DNA of 64,000 nt from Tetramitus jugosus (lineage: Eukaryota; Protista; Heterolobosea): NCBI GenBank assembly GCA_937625935.1, contig OW569378.1:393454-457453 (forward strand), given 5' to 3'. Each line of letters begins with the position of its first letter. The first letter of the stretch is position 1. The position numbers and the translations under genes are program-made. Shown here one piece after another: positions 618-20,013 of the stretch. The notes below the pieces were generated by a model, which had not been told where the DNA came from, did no database searches, and saw only the letters and a list, made by a program, of their open reading frames with translations.

Positions 618-2006
618 ATGATACGCACCAACAGTCTCAACAACAGCACCAGTTCAAAATTACTCCGATGGTGTCAATTCGTGACACAAGAGTACCCAAA
701 TGTTGACATTACGAATTTGAATGAAAGCTTTAGAAATGGGTTGGCCATGTGTGCCATCTTGCATCACTTTCACCCTGACTTGTTCGACTATGCTTCTCTG
801 AACGAAGGAAACCCAAGCTTCAATCACAAGCTGCACACGGAGCAATTTGAACTGGTCGGAGGAACATCGTACGTTGAACCGGATGATTTCTCGTTGAAGC
901 GTTTGGAGGAGAAATCTCTGTTTACGCATTTGCGCACCATGTATGAAACGTTGAATGACCGCGCGCCACATGTCGGTTATTTTGATAAGAAGACGTACGC
1001 GCCATTCGGATCCGAAACCACTACGGTTGCAGAGGATGACGTTGGTGATATGAGCGATGTTGAAAACGAAGATGTTGATAACAAGAGAGATGACAACAAT
1101 GGCGGCGGCAATAATGACCATACAGTAACACAACAACAAATACAACAACAACAACAACAACAAAATGTTGTTGAGGAAGACGAAAAGACTAGGCGCAGAA
1201 GAGAGCACTTGGAACGATTTGAAAGGGAGAGATTAGCTCGTGAGCAAGAAGCTGAACAGCTCTTAGCTACAACAATAACAAGCACAGAAGCTACTGAACC
1301 AACTGTAGCTACAGACTCGATAATGACTGATGATGAGAATGAGAATGATACTACTGCTACTACTACTACTACTAGTATCAGCAATGATGACAAGATGGAT
1401 ACTTCGATTGCTGTTGTGACTGAGAATCATGATGACAATGAGATACTAAGAATGAAGAATGCTGAGATTGAGGCACAAGAACAGAAATTGTTGTTGTTGC
1501 GACAGGAGCACGAACAACAGTTACAAGGCTTACAATTCCAATTCCAACAATTCCAAGAGCAAAGCGCGCAGAGACAACAAGAGCTCGAACAAAATCAAAG
1601 AGCACAACAAGAGTTGCTACAAAAAGAACTGGAAACTCAAAGACAAGATCAAGAAAAGCTCAGAGTGGAGCTACAAGAGCAAGTTCGATCACTGGTGGAG
1701 CATCATCAGTTTGAGCTACAAGAGAAGCAGGATAAGCTTCAATTGTCGCTGCAGCAACAAAAAGAAGAGCATGGATCAGAAGTACAAAAGTTGCAACAAC
1801 AGTTGCATCAACAGAAGGAGAGAGAACAGGATTTGGTGCGTCAATTGCAACAAAAGGAGCAACAATGGAAGGAACAGACAGAAAAACTGCAACAGCAACT
1901 GCAGGAAAAGAGCAACAATTCTTTCTTCTCTCAATTGCCAACTGCTGTGCAAATTGGTATCGTTGCTGTTCCTGCACTGTTGATTATGGCTTATTGTTTC
2001 TTTTAA
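618..2006 (+). CDS. Calponin-homology (MICAL/EHBP1/smoothelin-type CH) domain, coiled-coil and C-terminal tail-anchor protein
   Basis: LLRWCQ...NVDITNL..SFRNGLAMCAILHHFHPDLFDY CH motif; Q/E-rich coiled coil; hydrophobic C-terminus IGIVAVPALLIMAYCFF. Start taken at ATG 618 (ORF is open from 474). Confidence 0.8.
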   Translation: MIRTNSLNNSTSSKLLRWCQFVTQEYPNVDITNLNESFRNGLAMCAILHHFHPDLFDYASLNEGNPSFNHKLHTEQFELVGGTSYVEPDDFSLKRLEEKSLFTHLRTMYETLNDRAPHVGYFDKKTYAPFGSETTTVAEDDVGDMSDVENEDVDNKRDDNNGGGNNDHTVTQQQIQQQQQQQNVVEEDEKTRRRREHLERFERERLAREQEAEQLLATTITSTEATEPTVATDSIMTDDENENDTTATTTTTSISNDDKMDTSIAVVTENHDDNEILRMKNAEIEAQEQKLLLLRQEHEQQLQGLQFQFQQFQEQSAQRQQELEQNQRAQQELLQKELETQRQDQEKLRVELQEQVRSLVEHHQFELQEKQDKLQLSLQQQKEEHGSEVQKLQQQLHQQKEREQDLVRQLQQKEQQWKEQTEKLQQQLQEKSNNSFFSQLPTAVQIGIVAVPALLIMAYCFF

Positions 2007-2182
2007 GATGGTGAACTTGTGATCGCAAATTACAAATTATTTATTGCTTTATTCGTCGTGTTGTTGTTTTCATGTTTGTGATTCTTTAGCGTAAGTTGTG
2101 ACAATCGCAATCTGTTTGACACCTAAATACTTTGTGCAAGGAATTCCATTGAGGGTTTAATTTAATGCTCGTTTTACTTTTT

Positions 2183-2979
2183 TTACAAGTGGAAATGAAC
2201 AGGTCTGGATCCAGTGGACACAAACAACTCACACGGCGCCACAGATCGATCATCTCTCTTCTCTGATATCCATTTTGCTGTTGTCGTACGTCTCACCTTT
2301 ATAATAAAGTGCTTTCTTGCCCATAGTACCACATTAGGATCAATAGTCGTCTGAGTAGACAACAAATTGTCCAATGAATCATCCTTTTTCTCTGGCACAA
2401 TCTTTACTTGGAGGTTCAAATCAGAGAACACTCTTCTCTTCTTGTGTTGGTTCAATTCTTCATTGGTCAAGCTCTTGCTGACTGTGAGATTGTCCTGCGA
2501 AAATTTTCTCTTCTTATTGTTAGTGTTGTTCGTGTTGTTAGCTAAGAGTGAGGATTTTTCTTCTTGGTTTTGGATGGATTGTAGCACTGACATGTCCAAT
2601 TGTTCATCATCATCATCATTGTCATTATTGGCATCTTGCTTTTGTTCCTTGTCGTTTGTGGTTGTTGAAGCTTGATGCAAGTTGACGAGCTTATTGTGAC
2701 TTCTTTGCTTCTTCTTGCTTTTTTGATCCTTTTGTTGTTGCAATTGTTGTTGTAGCTTTTGGCTGTCGGTTGTTCATGAAATGGCATCATTGGGAAGAAC
2801 AAAAAGTGTCAGCAGCGATACATTGTAGTCAATCGGAGAATATATTTTGGCGCGAAAGTCGGAGTTACTTACAATTCTTCGGCAGCCGCTTGTTTGTTGG
2901 ATTTGGAGGAGACTTCCATTGGAACTTCTTCTTCATCATCAGAATCAATTGCGCTTATCACTGTCTTTGGTGTATTCAT
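2183..2979 (-). CDS. Two-exon basic/acidic protein, possibly nucleolar U3-associated (Bud21/Utp16/NOL7-like)
   Basis: Exon 1 (2979-2873) gives MNTPKTVISAIDSDDEEEVPMEVS...; intron 2872-2763 (GTAAGT...ACAG) splices in frame to the 2183-2743 ORF. The family guess rests only on the SDDEEEVPMEVS-like motif. Confidence 0.5.
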
Positions 2980-3202
2980 TTTTTTTCGTTGCGTTTTTCG
3001 TCGTCTTGTTTTCGTGTTTGAACAAAAATTGTTTGCTTTTTGTGTGTGAACAGTTCAATAAAATTAAAGAATCGCAACTAGATTCTCCGATCCCGTTGGG
3101 AATGAATACAATGGTTGGAGTACAATTCGGCAGCCGAATGAAAAGGCCAAGGTGGAACATGTCATTTCTTCGATAATGTGGATTGGTGATGATGATGTTT
3201 AT

Positions 3203-3805
3203 TTACAATTTGTGATTCACGGCTGCCAACAGAACAAAAACCTTGACAAACTCGAGCAAGACATAGACAATGTGAGTCAGTGGTGCATTGCCCTTGGCAT
3301 GAGCCTTCCTTCCATGCACAGTTTCTTGTATGACATGAATTCCAGATCGATCAAGTATCGGTTGCATCACCATGACTTGCATGACTAGAAACAACACTGG
3401 TATGACATCCAACAGCGTAACAACAGTCATGTCAGACGAACAAATGACTGTGAAAAGGTACCACAAACAAGCAAGAAACACTTCGGCCCTATTCAATGCA
3501 AAGAACACTGTTCTTCCCATGTCCAATCCAATATATCGAACACAGTATTGAGCTCTAAACTTGACCCAGGCTTCCAGTAACGAGACACCAAAGACTAGTC
3601 CACACCAGACGAGTTGTACCATGGCAGCATGTTTTGGCTTGATTCTCTGACTCAGGTGCAATGGATCTATTGTAATCCTCTGTTGATGCGCAAGTACCAG
3701 TGTGATCAGTGTCATGATGATCGCAGGGATGCGATTGGAGTAGTGCTTGGGCACGATTGACTTGTGAATCTTGTCAATTTGATCTGGAGTTGTTGAAATG
3801 ACCAT
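3203..3805 (-). CDS. Small multi-pass membrane protein, bacterial DUF4149/TMEM205-like
   Basis: WCGLVFGVSLLEAWVKFRA...GLDMGRTVFFALNRAE and HIVYVLLEFVKV motifs; 4-5 hydrophobic segments. First ATG at 3805. Confidence 0.65.
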   Translation of the reverse strand: MVISTTPDQIDKIHKSIVPKHYSNRIPAIIMTLITLVLAHQQRITIDPLHLSQRIKPKHAAMVQLVWCGLVFGVSLLEAWVKFRAQYCVRYIGLDMGRTVFFALNRAEVFLACLWYLFTVICSSDMTVVTLLDVIPVLFLVMQVMVMQPILDRSGIHVIQETVHGRKAHAKGNAPLTHIVYVLLEFVKVFVLLAAVNHKL

Positions 3806-12876: not shown

Positions 12877-14937
12877 ATGGTTGAACTCAATTCCCAACAG
12901 GTTAACACACTACACAATCAAGAACAGTATTCTGATCAAGGACTCATGAACAAGAAAGACTATGTACGACAAGAGAAGGGCGAGTTGAATGCAAAGGAAA
13001 TGGCATGTTATCAAAAGTTGTTGAGACCATTCGATTCCAGATTCACGTGTCCATTGTCGAATCAACTGTTATCGGATCCTGTGTTCATAGAGAAGGGTCA
13101 AGACGAACATGTAATGTTTGAGCGAAAGGCACTCTTGGTTTCTCCTGAAAGGATTGGATCAGAAAAAGTAAAAACGAACTCTTATTTTGTAAACTCCTTG
13201 AAGGAGTATCGAGAAGGAATGACTGAAAAATGCTACAAGTTTGCTCGAAAACTGTTGCATGACAACAAGGGCTACGAAGAAACATTAAAAGTAGTGGATC
13301 TAGGGTTGACCTGCGATTGCTCCCCGCATTTTTCAACCCTTGTTTCGAGTTCCTCACAGTTGTCAAAAGATGAGAGGGATCGAATGATAAAGAGAAGATT
13401 GGATATGTTGCATTACAAGTTGAGATGCCTAACAAAGTTAGGAAATGGCCACGACGAAGAAAATCTGAAAACCAGAATTGAATTGACGGTGTTGTTGGGT
13501 GAGCGGTTGTCTGATGATACTTCAGTTGAATCGAAGAACACTTTAGTGGCTGACATTCTTCACTTACTACGCTCGACATTAATGGGAGGTATGATAATGG
13601 ATGCTTCTATTGAGCAAAAGTGTCAATTATTGAGGGTCTTCTTGCACAACTTTCAAGCGGTGTTCGATAAGTGGAATTCAAGGATCGATACTTCTACTGC
13701 CAAAACTACCAATTTTTCAGTAAGTGAGGTGAATCATCTCATGATGAATGGAATAGATTGGATAGTAGAAAGAGGAGACAACAAAACAAATGAAGAACTT
13801 TGCTCGCTATACATCCATGCGATTGGATTGCTCGACTCTCATTGTCGATTGAATACAATACTCAAATTAATCGACAACAATGATCTACGACTGAGAAGTG
13901 AACAGATCATTGTGTTGTGGGATGTTCTTCAGCGAAAACACATTCAATCCTCAGATATCTCACGAATTGATCAATCAATCCTCAACACGATAAGAAATAG
14001 CAAATGGACCAACAATGAAAGGAAGTTACTTGCACAAAAGGTGAGACAATTGATCAACAAACTTAACATCGAGAAAACCTCTCTTTCTTCCCAGTTACTA
14101 TCTACACTTGAGGAAATTGAAAGTTGTAAAGTTGAGCCTGAAAAACCTGCCCAGAAAGCACAGGAAGTGGTTGTTCAATGCACATCTAATGTCCCATCCG
14201 AATTCAAGAAGAGAGGTAGTTACAGTGATACAGAAGCTCCAAAACTGTTTCAACCAGAACAGAGGTTCGCTCGGAAGCCATCCCGAACTCAAAGTGCTGA
14301 CTTTGCAGAGGTTTCAGCAGCCCGAAGTGAGTTCAGTCCCTCATACTCCAAGCAAGCCAAACAAATAGAACAACTTCAAAACATTGTGACGAAGCAACAG
14401 AGAGAAATTGATGAACTAAAGATGTTGTGCATTCAACTATCGACAACGAGTCGTACTGCACATCCCGAATTGATATACAATAGCGCTCTCTTAAGTGGCC
14501 GATGCGATGTATTTGTCAAACGGGACCACACCAAAACAACTATAGGAGAGTATTACTTATCCCAGGTGTTCGACTTGTGTGGATTTCAATGGCTTCTCAT
14601 GATCTATCCTCATGGAAAGAAGAAGGCCAAGTATTGTTCTGTTAATCTTCGGCTCGTCAATTGCCCCAACGATATCATTCTCCAAATCAGAGCTCAATAC
14701 TCCTTTTCCATGAACAACAACACGTGGAATAGAGAAAGGACCTTTTGTGCCGGCGGAAGAGGATGGGGAACAAAAAATTTTTGTTTGAAGGAGTTGTTCG
14801 ACAAGGAAGAAACAACAGTCGCGGGAAACAACTCTGGACACTTATTCACAGTTCAGATATCAATTGAAGAACTAAAAGTTTTCAAGACGAGAGAAGAACA
14901 AACACAGTTCAATCTGCTCCACCAAATTGAGATTTAA
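12877..14937 (+). CDS. U-box, helical/coiled-coil and C-terminal MATH domain protein (TRAF-like E3 ligase)
   Basis: FTCPLSNQLLSDPV...FERKAL (U-box); SQVFDLCGFQWLLMIYPHG...SVNLRL...GWGTKNF (MATH). Confidence 0.8.
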   Translation: MVELNSQQVNTLHNQEQYSDQGLMNKKDYVRQEKGELNAKEMACYQKLLRPFDSRFTCPLSNQLLSDPVFIEKGQDEHVMFERKALLVSPERIGSEKVKTNSYFVNSLKEYREGMTEKCYKFARKLLHDNKGYEETLKVVDLGLTCDCSPHFSTLVSSSSQLSKDERDRMIKRRLDMLHYKLRCLTKLGNGHDEENLKTRIELTVLLGERLSDDTSVESKNTLVADILHLLRSTLMGGMIMDASIEQKCQLLRVFLHNFQAVFDKWNSRIDTSTAKTTNFSVSEVNHLMMNGIDWIVERGDNKTNEELCSLYIHAIGLLDSHCRLNTILKLIDNNDLRLRSEQIIVLWDVLQRKHIQSSDISRIDQSILNTIRNSKWTNNERKLLAQKVRQLINKLNIEKTSLSSQLLSTLEEIESCKVEPEKPAQKAQEVVVQCTSNVPSEFKKRGSYSDTEAPKLFQPEQRFARKPSRTQSADFAEVSAARSEFSPSYSKQAKQIEQLQNIVTKQQREIDELKMLCIQLSTTSRTAHPELIYNSALLSGRCDVFVKRDHTKTTIGEYYLSQVFDLCGFQWLLMIYPHGKKKAKYCSVNLRLVNCPNDIILQIRAQYSFSMNNNTWNRERTFCAGGRGWGTKNFCLKELFDKEETTVAGNNSGHLFTVQISIEELKVFKTREEQTQFNLLHQIEI

Positions 14938-15124: not shown

Positions 15125-18100
15125 ATGAGTGATAGCACGAGTTCTACTTCTTCTACCCAACAACAACCACAACAACAAACCGTTGTGGAAGAAGCAACAA
15201 GTCAACCACAAGTCAGCAACACTGAAACAAAATCACAAAAGCAACAACAAAATCTGAAAGAACCGATTGCTGTATGTGTTGCCAATAGTGATAGTGGTGC
15301 TTGGTTTCACAAAACAAAATTTTTTGGATCTTTTCCAGCTCGATCCAATCATTGGGTATGTGCCCCCGTGTTGTTGTTGTTGCTTGTTGTTGCTTGTTGT
15401 TGTGTTTGTTTTTTGTGTGGAACCAACCGCCTTTTTAGCTCTTTGGTGTTTTTACGAGTGTCAAAAGCTTTTGTTACTGTTTTAAAAAAAGATGTGCGCC
15501 AGTGTACTGACAGTGTTGATAATCAATGAATGAATATGAAATATTTTTTGTTTTGCTATCATTGTTCATTGTTTATTGTTTATTGTTGTTCATGACTGCG
15601 ACGAAAAAGGGTCTCTCATTCTCTCACAACAAATTCCTGGTGCAAGGCGGCGTTTGCGACAACAAAAATCTCCATCGAACCATTTACGTTTTTGAGCGAC
15701 AAGCGAACAATACATGGTTCAGCACGAGTGCACCTGTTCAGAATCCACAAGACGCTCCTCCGCGCATCTGGAATCACACGGTCGTTTACTATCCGAAACA
15801 AAACTCCATTTATGTTTTTGGTGGCAGAAATCATTTACGATGCTTTCAAGAGACGTTTGTTTTGCAGTTGGATCCTGTTTGGTTGTGGTCAAAGATTATT
15901 TCTGTTCATAAGGTGAATCATCGATACAGTGTGCCTCTATCGACATCGACTGCGAATACTGCTTCGATGAATGGCAGCAATAATATTAATAATAACAAGT
16001 TGAGAATTCCGTGCAGGAGACATGATCATACGGCAGTGTTGATTGGCAATGAAATGGTTGTTTTTGGTGGAATGAGTGATCACAGTTTGAACAGGAGGGT
16101 GTTGAATGATGTTTGGGCGTTGGACTTGGATAATCACACGTGGAGAGATGTGATTGTATCGGTGAAAAATGGTGTGCCTGTTGAGAGGTACTCTCATGCT
16201 GCTATTGCGTTGGACGATGGGAAGAGTATGATGATTTGGGGAGGTGTTTCGAAAACGGGTCACAAGTTGAACGATTGTTGGATATTTGATTTGGGATTTA
16301 AATCGTGGAGACAGGTCATTTTAACAGGTACGGCTCCTCAGGCGAGAGTGGATTGTCAACTTGTGAGTATTGGCAGTGGTTTGGTCATTGGTTTCGGAGG
16401 ATATAGTAACATGCGGTATCACAAGGACTTTTTCGCGATTGATTTAGTCAAGAACCGATACATTGCGGTTGATGTCCCGAGAAAGGAGTTACCAAGTGCC
16501 AGAAAGGGTCATTCGTTGACTATGTTGCAAAAGAGTGGTTCATTTGATAATGTTGTTGTCATGTTGGGTGGCAATTCGAGAAAGCGAGGAAGATTGGATG
16601 ATATGTGGTCCATTGATGTTCAATTATTGAAGAATCGATTGCTCTACACTGGAAAGAATCTTGCTCAATCCCTCAGCGATCACAACGCAAAATATGACCG
16701 AATTACGAAGTGTATTGAAGAATTGGAGCACCACATGTCCAATCCTGAAATTGAATCCAAGAAGGAGTTGGTTCCAGTGAAGAATTTAGACAAGGGAGAG
16801 ACAGTTGAGGTCGAATTCGAAGCCAATGAACTCACGGCACTGTACATGGACCGAATGATTCTCGATACAGAGCGTAGAGATTTCAACAAGGCCATGGATG
16901 CACTGAAGAAGTTAAAGGACATTTCGAGCACTGATGTATCCTCGTTAGAGACAGCAGCACTCGTGTATTATCATTGTGGAGACCTTGATCAAGCAAGAGA
17001 GCACTTGGATCGTGTTGACCGAAACCAGTTGAGTGTCGAAGGTCACATTCTATTGACTCAAGTATACTTGGCTTGTGGAAGCACGACCCAGGCAACCAAT
17101 TGTGTCAAGGACTTGTTGGACTCGCGTGGCAAGCAATTAAAATCGAATCAAGTTAGCGAACTGAGCGAGTGGAGAAATTATCTTTCAAAGCTCGGTACTC
17201 CAAACACCAGAGGTCGCAGAGGCACTATTCTAGGACCCGCTCCCCATTCGAATCTAGCGACTACTCTGCCAGATCAAATGATTGCTTACACAGAGACGAT
17301 TGACGACGCATTCTATGAAGCCGAGTTCGATGATGCAACAGAAGATACAATGAATGACCAGACGGAAGCGGACCTGAGAACCTCTGTGCCTGACGATCAA
17401 CCAAACCAACAGAACTCCCATGACATTATTATTGCAGGTGGTGCATCCTGTGGTTTGAAAACAATGTTACAAAACTGGAGAGCAGCATTAGTGCAGAGCG
17501 TCAGTCCAAACGAGTGTGAGCACTACCGATCCAAGATACGGAATCAAACAGTGGATATACTTTTTGCTTGTGTTGATCTGATAGAAATGTTTAATGCGAG
17601 TATCGAGATACAGATGCGAGAGTCATTGGATATTGTTTTTAACCGCGAGCGAATGTTGTTTGAGCAGGCACAGGCCGAACGAATTCAAGCAATTCGAGAC
17701 TTGAAGGAAAAGAACAGATCAGACTACACAGAAGATGATTTTGTGTTGGTTGGTACATTTTGTAGAGATCGTGCCGTTCGAACAGTCATCAAGTCTCTGT
17801 ACGAAATTTTGAGCTACATGGATGAAAAACAGTTGTGTATCGAGCCTGTGTCCACACTTCTCACGAGTGATATTCACTATTACATGAATGAACAGAATGT
17901 AGCTCGTATAATATGTTCCGGTTCACTCTTTCCAATTATTGCCTCTGATGTGCTTCGAATTGCTCATAAACAGCATTTCTTCTATCCGGCACATTTACAT
18001 TCAGGGGAGGAAGAACAAGCATATGAATCAGACTATCCTATTCTAGAGTTGATGTACAAAAAGATTCCATACAACATTGTTTCGGTTCGAGATGTGCAGA

Positions 18101-18696
18101 GTGTATTTAATGTAGAGTCAGGTGAGAGCATCGCTGTTGATTTGCATCAACGATTCCCTCATTTGAGTTGTGTTGTGCTCGTAGCCAACTTGGCAGACGT
18201 GTTTAGCAAGCACAACAGCTCACTGAATGAAGGAGAAGAAGAGTATGCTGTTCTGTCAGGAGGTGTCACCTACAATAAGAACAGCAGCTCTTCTATCGTT
18301 GCAAGTTTGAGATTATTCCATGCAATTTGCAATGACTTGGCATTGGCAGATAAGCCCGTAGTGATTTTGTTTACGCACTGCGATGAGTTCGCTAGAATGT
18401 GCAATAGTGTGGCAAAGGTGAACAGCCCTGGTGTTTATTCCTTGCAGAATGTGTTGCCAAAGTTCTATCTCCCAGCAGCAGACAGTGGTATCAGTTTAGG
18501 CAAGAGTGTGTCTGTCTTTTTGGAGAAGTGTTTCAATGACCTAAATGAGACCAACTCCAATTCGACACGAAGGTTGCATTTCCGTTATTTTGATAGCAAT
18601 GAACAAGCTCAAGCCATGGCGATTTTCAAGTTTGTGGACAGTGTTGCGAATGCTGTTCGTGCACATAACATTTTGAAGGACATGAAAATGCTGTAA
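15125..18696 (+). CDS. Kelch beta-propeller, TPR and degenerate heterotrimeric G-alpha domain fusion protein
   Basis: Six Kelch repeats (R..H....GG...D.W); TPR-like helices; C-terminal ~420 aa colinear with G-alpha. Probable exon 1 15125-15355 and intron 15356-15609 (GTATGT...AAG). Confidence 0.8.
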
Positions 18697-19158
18697 ACTA
18701 CGAACTAGAGCGTGCCATAAATGTTGAATGGTGATGTGTACTACAACAATAAAGTTCCTCAACTCACCAAGTGGAACTGTCCATCTGTATGCGAATTCAT
18801 CGCACCTGGGAGCAGCACAAAAGAGCTATTTAGCTTCCAAACATCAAGATTCACACCAAACATCGCCCACACGTCGAAAGAAAAGATTCGGTCTAACCGG
18901 TAACGAAAACGCGCCAAACCTCGAACTGTCAACCATAGTCAATAAAAGGAAAAGTAACAGCACCCCGAGATACCGTTCGAACCAAAACCCACTTGTCACT
19001 GAAACACGAGAGAGAGCAAACAACAAACAAACTGCTGGCTACTACACTCAACAATATAATACTACTTATATCCTCAGGCTACCCCACACAACTACCAACT
19101 CACCTTCTTGTACATACATATCACAACAACAACAAATAACAACAAACAACAAACAACA

Positions 19159-20013
19159 ATGACACATCTTCACCAACATCTCAAAAGAAACAGGAACAAT
19201 AGGCTTGACTTGTATCTTATAGGATCAAAAAACGTTGGAAAATCTGCTTTAATATCCAGATTCCAATCTTCTCCACTACCACTTGACTTGAACAGACATC
19301 CTAGAAACAAGGTTCGTTTGCACGAGCTTTCCTCAAAGGATGTGCTTCAGTTTGTAAAGGATGAACACTTTTTGCATGAACACTGTGGATTCATGTTTGT
19401 ATATTCTGTAGATGACCAGGATTCGTTGGAACAAGCACAACTTGCTTATCGGACCTTGCTCTTTCTTCAAGAAGAACAAGGCTTTACGACAAGGTTGTCA
19501 GCTGTCATTGTCGGAACAAAATATAATTGTCCGTTAACTACGGATGACCGACAGCAGTCGGAGCGGCCACATGATGACTTCTCCTCTCTGCCATGGTACT
19601 TGACAACGATTGATGAAAATGAGAAGCATCTAACATCTAACAAGAGGCCTTTGCACAGTCATACGCCGTTTGATCATTTAATACAAATGGTTCACGACCG
19701 TTATCACTACCTTCAAGAGATGGCAGCTTGTTGGAATGATGATCAGCCAATCGTCAGTGAAGAAGTTGAGCTATCACAACAAGCAGAAGAAGAAACTGAA
19801 GAGCAAGAAGAAATACCAGAGAACTATTCTCCACCACAGATGATTTCCCTACCTTCAGTTGCAAGCATGGTCCATGTCGCACAAATGTCGACGAGTATAA
19901 CGGTTCCGATGAGCGGACAAGAGCAACCAAGTGCCACCGAACCAGCTGTTACACCTCGGTTGAACGCTGTACCGGATCCAACCAAGGACACCGCTGCAGA
20001 CGTTCCTGAATAA
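19159..20013 (+). CDS. Divergent Ras-superfamily small GTPase-like protein
   Basis: LYLIGSKNVGKSALISRF P-loop; GFMFVYSVDDQDSL; VIVGTK. No DxxG (G3) motif and no CaaX. Confidence 0.65.
   Translation: MTHLHQHLKRNRNNRLDLYLIGSKNVGKSALISRFQSSPLPLDLNRHPRNKVRLHELSSKDVLQFVKDEHFLHEHCGFMFVYSVDDQDSLEQAQLAYRTLLFLQEEQGFTTRLSAVIVGTKYNCPLTTDDRQQSERPHDDFSSLPWYLTTIDENEKHLTSNKRPLHSHTPFDHLIQMVHDRYHYLQEMAACWNDDQPIVSEEVELSQQAEEETEEQEEIPENYSPPQMISLPSVASMVHVAQMSTSITVPMSGQEQPSATEPAVTPRLNAVPDPTKDTAADVPE

Follow-up and report, generated by a model that had tools for sequence, protein, structure and literature searches.

The textbook example of a nucleotide switch is the G-alpha subunit. The locus considered here raises the question of what a G-alpha domain might do when every one of its nucleotide motifs is altered. 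It lies in a stretch of 64,000 nucleotides from the heterolobosean protist Tetramitus jugosus (assembly GCA_937625935.1, contig OW569378.1, positions 393,454 to 457,453 of the forward strand). This whole stretch is referred to below as the window; its coordinates are used throughout, and the gene and all of its features are on the plus (+) strand. A preliminary description of the window had proposed that the gene at 15125..18696 encodes a Kelch propeller, a tetratricopeptide repeat (TPR) and a pseudo-G-alpha in a single chain. The results presented below establish that a Kelch-TPR-like-G-alpha gene is real and expressed, that it has two exons and that it encodes one polypeptide. Its product is probably a conserved, nucleotide-independent scaffold or adaptor containing a pseudo-G-alpha.

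A single spliced and expressed gene

The extent of the gene, from start codon to stop codon (15125..18696, approximately 1105 aa when spliced), was established from open reading frames (ORFs), the sequence itself, RNA contigs and a near-identical protein, P0005. The ORF listing contains an open frame of 1056 codons at 15526-18696. Upstream of it, an ATG at 15125 begins a 231-nt exon of 77 codons (exon 1, 15125..15355), which encodes an N-terminus that is disordered and rich in Ser and Gln, together with the first Kelch strands (WFHKTKFFGSFPARSNHW). This exon is followed directly by GT, and the 254-nt GT..AG phase 0 intron (15356..15609) closes with an AG acceptor at 15608-15609, after which the frame resumes in phase at 15610. 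Exon 2 (15610..18696) comprises 1028 codons and the stop codon, as indicated by the ORF listing and the RNA contigs. The spliced product is therefore 77 + 1028 = 1105 aa in length, and across the junction it reads FPARSNHW followed by GLSFSHNKFLVQGG, which is a normal Kelch blade. The preliminary description had noted a frame intact for over 1000 aa, and 1105 codons are indeed open after splicing.

The gene stretch was found in nine RNA runs, mostly soil metatranscriptomes from separate studies. In three of the four RNA runs mapped, contigs displayed the splice joint, at 15354/15609 (254 nt skipped, GT..AG, cut +1). One RNA contig of 3164 nt spans the region from exon 1 (15291) to 18708, and thus holds Kelch, helical and G-alpha parts and continues beyond the stop codon; further contigs reach approximately 200-250 nt into the 3′ untranslated region, stopping short of the next gene. 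The entire spliced coding sequence is present in a 3630-nt contig (L016) from a Joint Genome Institute (JGI) metatranscriptome. Its product, P0005 (1104 aa), shows 10 differences from exon 2 over 1028 residues, and its N-terminus is that of the exon 1 product, bar a few changes and a one-residue deletion. In the searches, the two exons were submitted separately by reference, and P0005, as a natural transcript-derived protein, was used in place of the spliced product. A scan of metagenome contigs for the fusion returned a sole match, which was the same organism's transcript contig. RNA sequencing had been suggested as a check on whether one transcript carries all of the domains, and it is answered in the affirmative by single contigs that extend from exon 1 through every one of the three, with the splice seen in three runs. 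The protein is thus expressed in soil.

Comparison of the gene with contig L016 gave proportions of synonymous (pS) and non-synonymous (pN) differences of 0.037 and 0.004, respectively, and an overall pN/pS of 0.11. By region, pN/pS was 0.08 for the Kelch part, 0.22 for the middle part and 0.09 for the G-alpha part. Of the polymorphisms that the RNA contigs support best, 26 were synonymous and 11 non-synonymous for the whole gene, and nine synonymous and one non-synonymous for the G-alpha part. All parts of the fusion protein are under purifying selection, and none is decaying.

The transcript contigs of the different soil studies also differ from the window by approximately 1%, with some 40 single-nucleotide polymorphism positions in 15283-18788, and a 3-nt deletion at 15275, in the Q-rich N-terminus, was observed in transcript contigs from soil studies. 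These differences suggest that several strains of the organism are widespread in soils.

The G-alpha domain, its motifs and its partners in the chain

The C-terminal part of the protein (17419..18693) is a G-alpha-like domain, with Ras-like and helical subdomains, and is predicted to be a pseudoGTPase. A Pfam search with the 1056-codon ORF matched PF00503 with an E value of 3.1e-14 and a score of 53.3 bits, which exceeds the cut-off of 48.8; ORF residues 619-1032 were aligned with profile positions 9-324 of 333, so that both the Ras-like and the helical domain are covered. The genome-wide PF00503 search gave 55.3 bits at the same locus. An AlphaFold model was obtained for the last 438 residues from a 12-row alignment of the family described below and the same genome's own G-alphas. 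It has a mean predicted local distance difference test (pLDDT) value of 69 and a predicted template modelling (pTM) score of 0.64, and its elements are in the order beta1/alpha1/helical domain/beta4-6/alpha5; model residues 196-253, from switch I to beta4, are of low confidence. When the model was compared with the PDB using Foldseek, G-alpha chains accounted for 50 of the 50 matches listed, over approximately 420-440 aligned columns and with template modelling scores (TM-scores) of up to 0.58. The top match among those listed was Gi-alpha-3 (6mhe; E 2e-10, probability 1.0). The nearest clusters in the ESM Atlas, a language-model resource, were all G-alpha, one of them being a plant XLG. Identity to solved G-alphas is approximately 14-16%. 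It is apparent that the C-terminal domain has a G-alpha fold, and its start at about 17419 agrees with the position, near 17422, from which colinearity with a whole G-alpha had been reported.

Several elements of the fold are retained. These are the strand before the P-loop, the linker-1/alpha-A motif (SVSPNECEHY compared with GYSEEECKQY), an LxDY-like beta4 strand, the alpha-G/beta5 segment SLRLFHAICND...VVILF, and the C-terminal end of the long helix alpha5 (18667..18693), which reads NILKDMKML where Gi has NNLKDCGLF and whose final residues stay hydrophobic throughout the family. The domain has neither an N-terminal Met-Gly lipidation signal nor an alpha-N helix.

The nucleotide motifs were compared with those of solved Gi and Gs chains (phmmer), of the same genome's canonical G-alphas (MAFFT) and of a hidden Markov model (HMM) built from the latter; a canonical reference from this genome (L003) has GTGETGKT, DVGGQ and NKVD. 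The G1 or P-loop remnant, GGASCGLKT (17437..17463), stands where GxGESGKST or, more generally, GxxxxGK[ST] is expected, and in it Lys is replaced by Leu and Ser/Thr by Lys. The switch I remnant, DVLRIAHKQ (17947..17973), corresponds to canonical RxxTxGI; the MAFFT alignment pairs RIAHKQHFF with TCRKTTGIV of the same genome's canonical G-alpha, so that the catalytic Arg is replaced by His and the Mg-binding Thr by Gln or His. At G4, NKxD has become THCD within LFTHCDEF (18367..18390), as found with phmmer, MAFFT and the HMM, and the Asp alone is kept. At G5, TCAT(DT) has become YFDS within RYFDSNEQ (18583..18606; MAFFT and HMM). Neither a DxxGQ motif nor a switch II helix could be found or aligned in the domain, SVRDVQ being the candidate strand. 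The family-conserved segment MYKKIPYNIVSVRDVQ (18052..18099) occupies the beta2/beta3 position, with low model confidence, and its alignment to canonical G3 is not established.

The preliminary description's view that every nucleotide motif is altered is thus upheld, with the P-loop Lys, the catalytic Arg, NKxD and TCAT lost and no DxxGQ alignable. Most of the segment pairings that it had offered were recovered as well: those of the P-loop, of SLRLFHAICND...LFTHCD and of the NILKD tail by phmmer to Gi/Gs chains and by the HMM of the genome's canonical G-alphas, and that of DVLRIAHK by MAFFT. The exception is the pairing of IVSVRDVQ with MFDVGGQ, which was not confirmed; a correspondence with FDVGGQ is plausible by position, in a region that no profile aligns and that is modelled with low confidence.

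The six-bladed Kelch beta-propeller (15302..16620) is split by the intron. It matched PF24681 (E 2.5e-50) and PF24981 (E 3.9e-31), and the single-repeat models Kelch_1, Kelch_3, Kelch_4 and Kelch_6 all exceeded the Pfam cut-offs. The best sequence match in the PDB was the N-terminal propeller of an outer-arm dynein heavy chain; KLHDC3, FBXO42, LZTR1 and KLHDC2/10 were also matched. A basic loop in the last blade, GGNSRKRGRLDD (16567-16602), has the pattern GGxSRKRGRLDD, which is strictly conserved in four of the five family members and may offer a lead, if a speculative one, to the mode of action.

A helical region (16621..17196) follows, consisting of a long helix, a small hairpin and a seven-helix TPR-like repeat (approximately 16816-17196). 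Pfam matches of the TPR, ANAPC3 and TTC21 types, at ORF residues ~437-533, were all sub-threshold (E 1e-2 to 1e-4), and such sub-threshold TPR-type matches recur in all of the relatives. The repeat is probably best labelled TPR-like, because its resemblance to HOP TPR2A and TTC21B reaches just E ~1e-3 with phmmer. The helical region is joined to the G-alpha domain by a disordered acidic and polar linker (17197..17418), with pLDDT below 50 at residues 604-679, which is unalignable among the relatives.

A full-length AlphaFold model, made from four sequences and numbered according to P0005, had a pLDDT of 54.5 and a pTM of 0.45, which is too weak for inter-domain geometry. The model places a disordered N-terminus at residues 1-57; approximately 24 strands at residues 59-413, in six groups that represent the propeller blades; a long helix at 427-453; a hairpin at 465-476; seven helices at 481-605 (pLDDT 64-82); the disordered linker at 604-679; and the G-alpha domain from residue 680. 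The fusion protein therefore consists of three folded modules and two flexible segments. No confident inter-domain packing was found in this model. A predicted complex of the Kelch and G-alpha domains scored 0.00, with controls not run, and is evidence neither way.

Relatives and genomic surroundings

To identify relatives, the G-alpha part was searched by exhaustive phmmer over 1.84 billion representative proteins, with E values up to 0.001. Four matches were obtained, comprising the protein's own fragment and one protein each from Acrasis kona (KAL0489286.1, of 1145 aa and bearing the annotation 'actin-fragmin kinase'), Willaertia magna (KAL9642215.1, a hypothetical protein of 1175 aa) and assembly GCA_016850925.1 (808 aa). 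A profile search with the full-length alignment yielded one new member, from Logan contig ERR14790941_15960 (P0009, 726 aa), amid some 200 plain Kelch proteins. For both of the latter two members, the C-terminal exon lies just downstream of a truncated model. Homologue searches with the G-alpha part alone, and with the family G-alpha alignment, returned only the protein's own fragment. In all four relatives, Pfam analysis found the Kelch domain, the TPR-type matches and a G-alpha domain above cut-off, in the same order, and full-length identity to the Tetramitus protein ranges from 24 to 28%. A search of related genomes, which had been proposed as a check, thus located the same fusion in Acrasis kona, Willaertia magna, GCA_016850925.1 and the Logan contig. 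To judge from these sequences, the architecture is not unique to the Tetramitus jugosus genome, and the four relatives are unannotated or mis-annotated.

The motifs have been altered to different degrees within the family. The P-loop reads GGGPSSGCTT in Acrasis, GEKKSGLTT in Willaertia and GADRHNGCTT in GCA_016850925.1, so that the Lys is lost in four of the five members; the Logan member retains an intact GSPGTGKTT, together with SKND at G4. The other G4 sequences are TKFD (Acrasis and GCA_016850925.1) and THLD (Willaertia). The position of the catalytic Arg is occupied by His in Acrasis, Phe in Willaertia, Asp in GCA_016850925.1 and Gly in the Logan member, and no member of the family has the Mg-binding Thr, the catalytic Arg or the catalytic Gln. 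Switch II was found in none of the five members, and the segment past switch I varies from approximately 10 to approximately 100 residues. The C-terminal tails end in ML (Tetramitus), MM (Acrasis), LL (Willaertia and GCA_016850925.1) and MI (Logan). The Tetramitus member is the most diverged, scoring 13.6 bits against the canonical G-alpha HMM compared with 44-60 bits for the others. Because the Logan relative still has GxxxxGKT and SKxD, the fusion predates the loss of the motifs, that of the P-loop Lys included.

The Tetramitus genome searched comprises 26.35 Mb in 56 contigs. No paralogue of the fusion was found in it, and no gene neighbourhood shared between family members was found. At least 25 other G-alpha loci exceed the Pfam cut-off in this genome; many sit in open frames of 450-960 codons, and long N- or C-terminal extensions seem to be common. 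One of them (L004, C1:155926-159915; ORF 715-3609 on the minus strand) has 965 codons and encodes an F-box-like domain (PF12937, E 7.5e-8) on the C-terminal side of a strong G-alpha domain (PF00503, E 1e-70), and a pattern search of this G-alpha/F-box fusion found neither GxxxxGK[ST] nor DxGG[QH]. Another (L012, C35:377739-381896), situated on the same contig approximately 14 kb upstream of the window, is a G-alpha of 552 codons in which the P-loop (GAEDSGKS) is intact and NKKD is present; it has FDLSGHK in place of DxGGQ and may be a GTPase-deficient paralogue.

Within the window, the neighbour at 19108-20013 codes for a Ras-like protein that Pfam matches only weakly to Ras (E 2e-5), and the RNA contigs are interrupted in low-complexity sequence at 19123-19153. 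The product of the upstream gene (12877-14937) is 686 aa long and has a MATH domain (PF22486, E 4.6e-10) in its C-terminal part.

Possible functions and comparison with known systems

The loss of motifs, the purifying selection and the conservation across genera make a nucleotide-independent pseudo-G-alpha, as put forward in the preliminary description, the best reading of the domain. The protein, of approximately 1105 aa, would be cytosolic, and its G-alpha domain descends from a heterotrimeric G-protein alpha subunit. With the helical domain, alpha5 and the hydrophobic tail conserved and the switch machinery gone, the G-alpha fold may have been retained as a fixed (constitutive) protein-interaction module, while the Kelch propeller and the TPR-like repeat would recruit other partners. 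As far as can be judged from sequence, scaffolding is the most likely mode of action.

Several considerations weigh against this reading. The loss of consensus motifs would not by itself prove that nucleotide binding is lost; a Lys is present one position past the canonical P-loop Lys, as though the Lys-Thr pair had been shifted, and the G4 Asp is retained. The region between switch I and switch II is a part of the model in which confidence is low, the TPR assignment depends on sub-threshold matches, and the family of five sequences limits what may be concluded from conservation.

Two alternatives bear on the state of the domain itself. It could still be a nucleotide-regulated switch with non-canonical chemistry, either binding nucleotide without hydrolysing it or making use of the altered motifs. 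Wherever the G4 region of a member was recovered, its Asp has been retained, xKxD is present in three of the five members and an intact P-loop in one of the five, and the displacement of Lys-Thr by one position in the Tetramitus P-loop remnant would be in keeping with such a switch. It is nonetheless considered unlikely, given that G1, switch I, G4 and G5 are altered together with no G3 found, that the whole family lacks the Mg-binding Thr as well as the catalytic Arg and Gln, and that the Tetramitus member is the one furthest from canonical G-alphas (13.6 as against 44-60 bits). Degenerate motifs and a low G-alpha score are also what a decaying pseudogene might display, or an artefact of assembly or gene modelling that fused two genes. 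The intact 1105-codon frame, the spliced transcripts in runs from several studies, the pN/pS of 0.09-0.11 and the recurrence of the domain order in four other organisms render this extremely improbable; the pseudogene and two-gene readings were rejected, as the RNA contigs, the relatives' domain order and pN/pS contradict both.

The remaining alternatives concern the way in which the modules work together. The preliminary description had envisaged a single-chain G-protein mimic, in which the Kelch propeller folds onto the G-alpha domain as G-beta does and signals by the opening and closing of the pair. Each of the five members does combine propeller and G-alpha domain, in an unvarying order, in a single polypeptide; the long flexible linker would allow folding back, and in yeast the Kelch proteins Gpb1/2 function in the pathway of Gpa2 (PMC2965690). 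This mimic is nevertheless quite improbable. It is left unsupported because switch II, which with the N-terminal helix provides the contacts for G-beta, is missing and unconserved in the family, the segment that replaces it varying in length and sequence among the members. Moreover, the N-terminal helix is itself absent, the two domains are separated by approximately 190 helical residues and a disordered linker of approximately 75 residues, the full-length model (pTM 0.45) has no confident inter-domain arrangement, and the Kelch domain is nearest to dynein N-terminal, KLHDC, FBXO42 and LZTR1 propellers rather than to G-beta. Placement of the propeller on a switch II face is thus unsupported. 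The same list of propellers points to another role, that of a substrate-recruiting adaptor in a ubiquitin or other modification pathway, in which the propeller would pick the target and the G-alpha-like domain would tether it to G-protein partners: among the solved Kelch domains nearest to that of the fusion are those of KLHDC2/3/10, FBXO42 and LZTR1, which are cullin-RING substrate receptors, and the same genome encodes the G-alpha fused to an F-box. Such an adaptor is given little credence, since the Pfam search revealed no domain for docking to a ligase, such as BTB, BACK, F-box or SOCS/BC-box, and the best Kelch match is the dynein heavy-chain propeller, which is not part of a ligase. C-terminal peptides are known to be read by KLHDC-type propellers as well as by HOP-type TPRs, and the hydrophobic alpha5 tail is kept in the family; for these reasons capture of the protein's own alpha5 tail is conceivable, if speculative. 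It could give a lineage-specific, self-contained signalling device, in which a nucleotide-free G-alpha is held or released by its own Kelch or TPR module and a receptor or ligand switches it without a GTP cycle. Such a device seems very unlikely; if it existed, it would be a G-protein-like conformational switch that needs neither nucleotide nor G-beta-gamma.

The conserved scaffold or adaptor with a pseudo-G-alpha may be compared with several known systems. With heterotrimeric G-alpha (PF00503; Gi alpha-1/3, 6mhe, 1gia), the domain is homologous over its full length, through Ras-like and helical parts and in the same order of elements. It differs in that none of the five G-box motifs is present in unaltered form, in the absence of switch II, the N-terminal helix and a lipidation site, and in being the C-terminal part of an 1105-aa protein, with the approximately 14-16% identity noted above. 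As in other pseudoGTPases, a GTPase fold has been kept, under purifying selection, while the nucleotide motifs have been lost. In the yeast Gpa2 system, a Kelch propeller is likewise tied to a G-alpha pathway, in which the Kelch proteins Gpb1/2 (Krh1/2) act on PKA regulation (PMC2965690). The precedent, which the preliminary description had invoked, holds to the extent that Kelch proteins are linked to a G-alpha pathway; Gpa2 and Gpb1/2, in contrast to the fusion, are separate polypeptides acting on PKA, and Gpa2 is an active GTPase, so that the parallel is one of analogy, the Kelch domains being compared at the level of the fold.

No description of a G-alpha-derived pseudoGTPase fused to Kelch and TPR was found in the literature searched. 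The Kelch/TPR-like/degenerate G-alpha order was not found there either, although surveys of G-alpha architecture might hold an earlier mention. Neither de Mendoza 2014 (PMC3971589) nor the Acrasis genome paper (PMC11589745) mentions a Kelch/G-alpha fusion. The statement that this architecture belongs to no described protein thus stands for the literature searched, but not for the databases, in which four relatives were already present, unannotated or mis-annotated. These have the order of domains in common with the Tetramitus protein and, like it, lack the catalytic Arg and switch II; they differ in the length of the insert past switch I and in that some keep xKxD and one the P-loop Lys. The annotation can be corrected accordingly for the Acrasis 'actin-fragmin kinase' and the Willaertia hypothetical protein, none of the relatives having been recognised as a G-alpha. 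While the parts are known, the order in which they are combined is a new and conserved architecture, which is added to the large and little-studied G-protein repertoire of the Heterolobosea and should be of interest to specialists in G-protein evolution.

The closest parallel found is with the plant XLG proteins, which act independently of nucleotide (PMC8584482). As in XLG1-3, a G-alpha domain with degenerate motifs ends a much longer protein. The N-terminal extensions of the XLGs, unlike those of the fusion, consist of a Cys-rich region and a nuclear localization signal rather than Kelch and TPR, and the XLGs still bind G-beta-gamma. By this comparison, the likeness would be functional only, and the fusion, with its Kelch/TPR-like N-terminus and its heterolobosean relatives, would not be a member of the XLG group. 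As the two occur in different lineages, plants and Heterolobosea-like protists, they would therefore have had independent origins. If the reading given here is true, the family represents a second independent G-alpha that works without a GTP cycle, in a lineage distant from plants and with different fused domains, and it could reveal which parts of the G-alpha surface have a use of their own.

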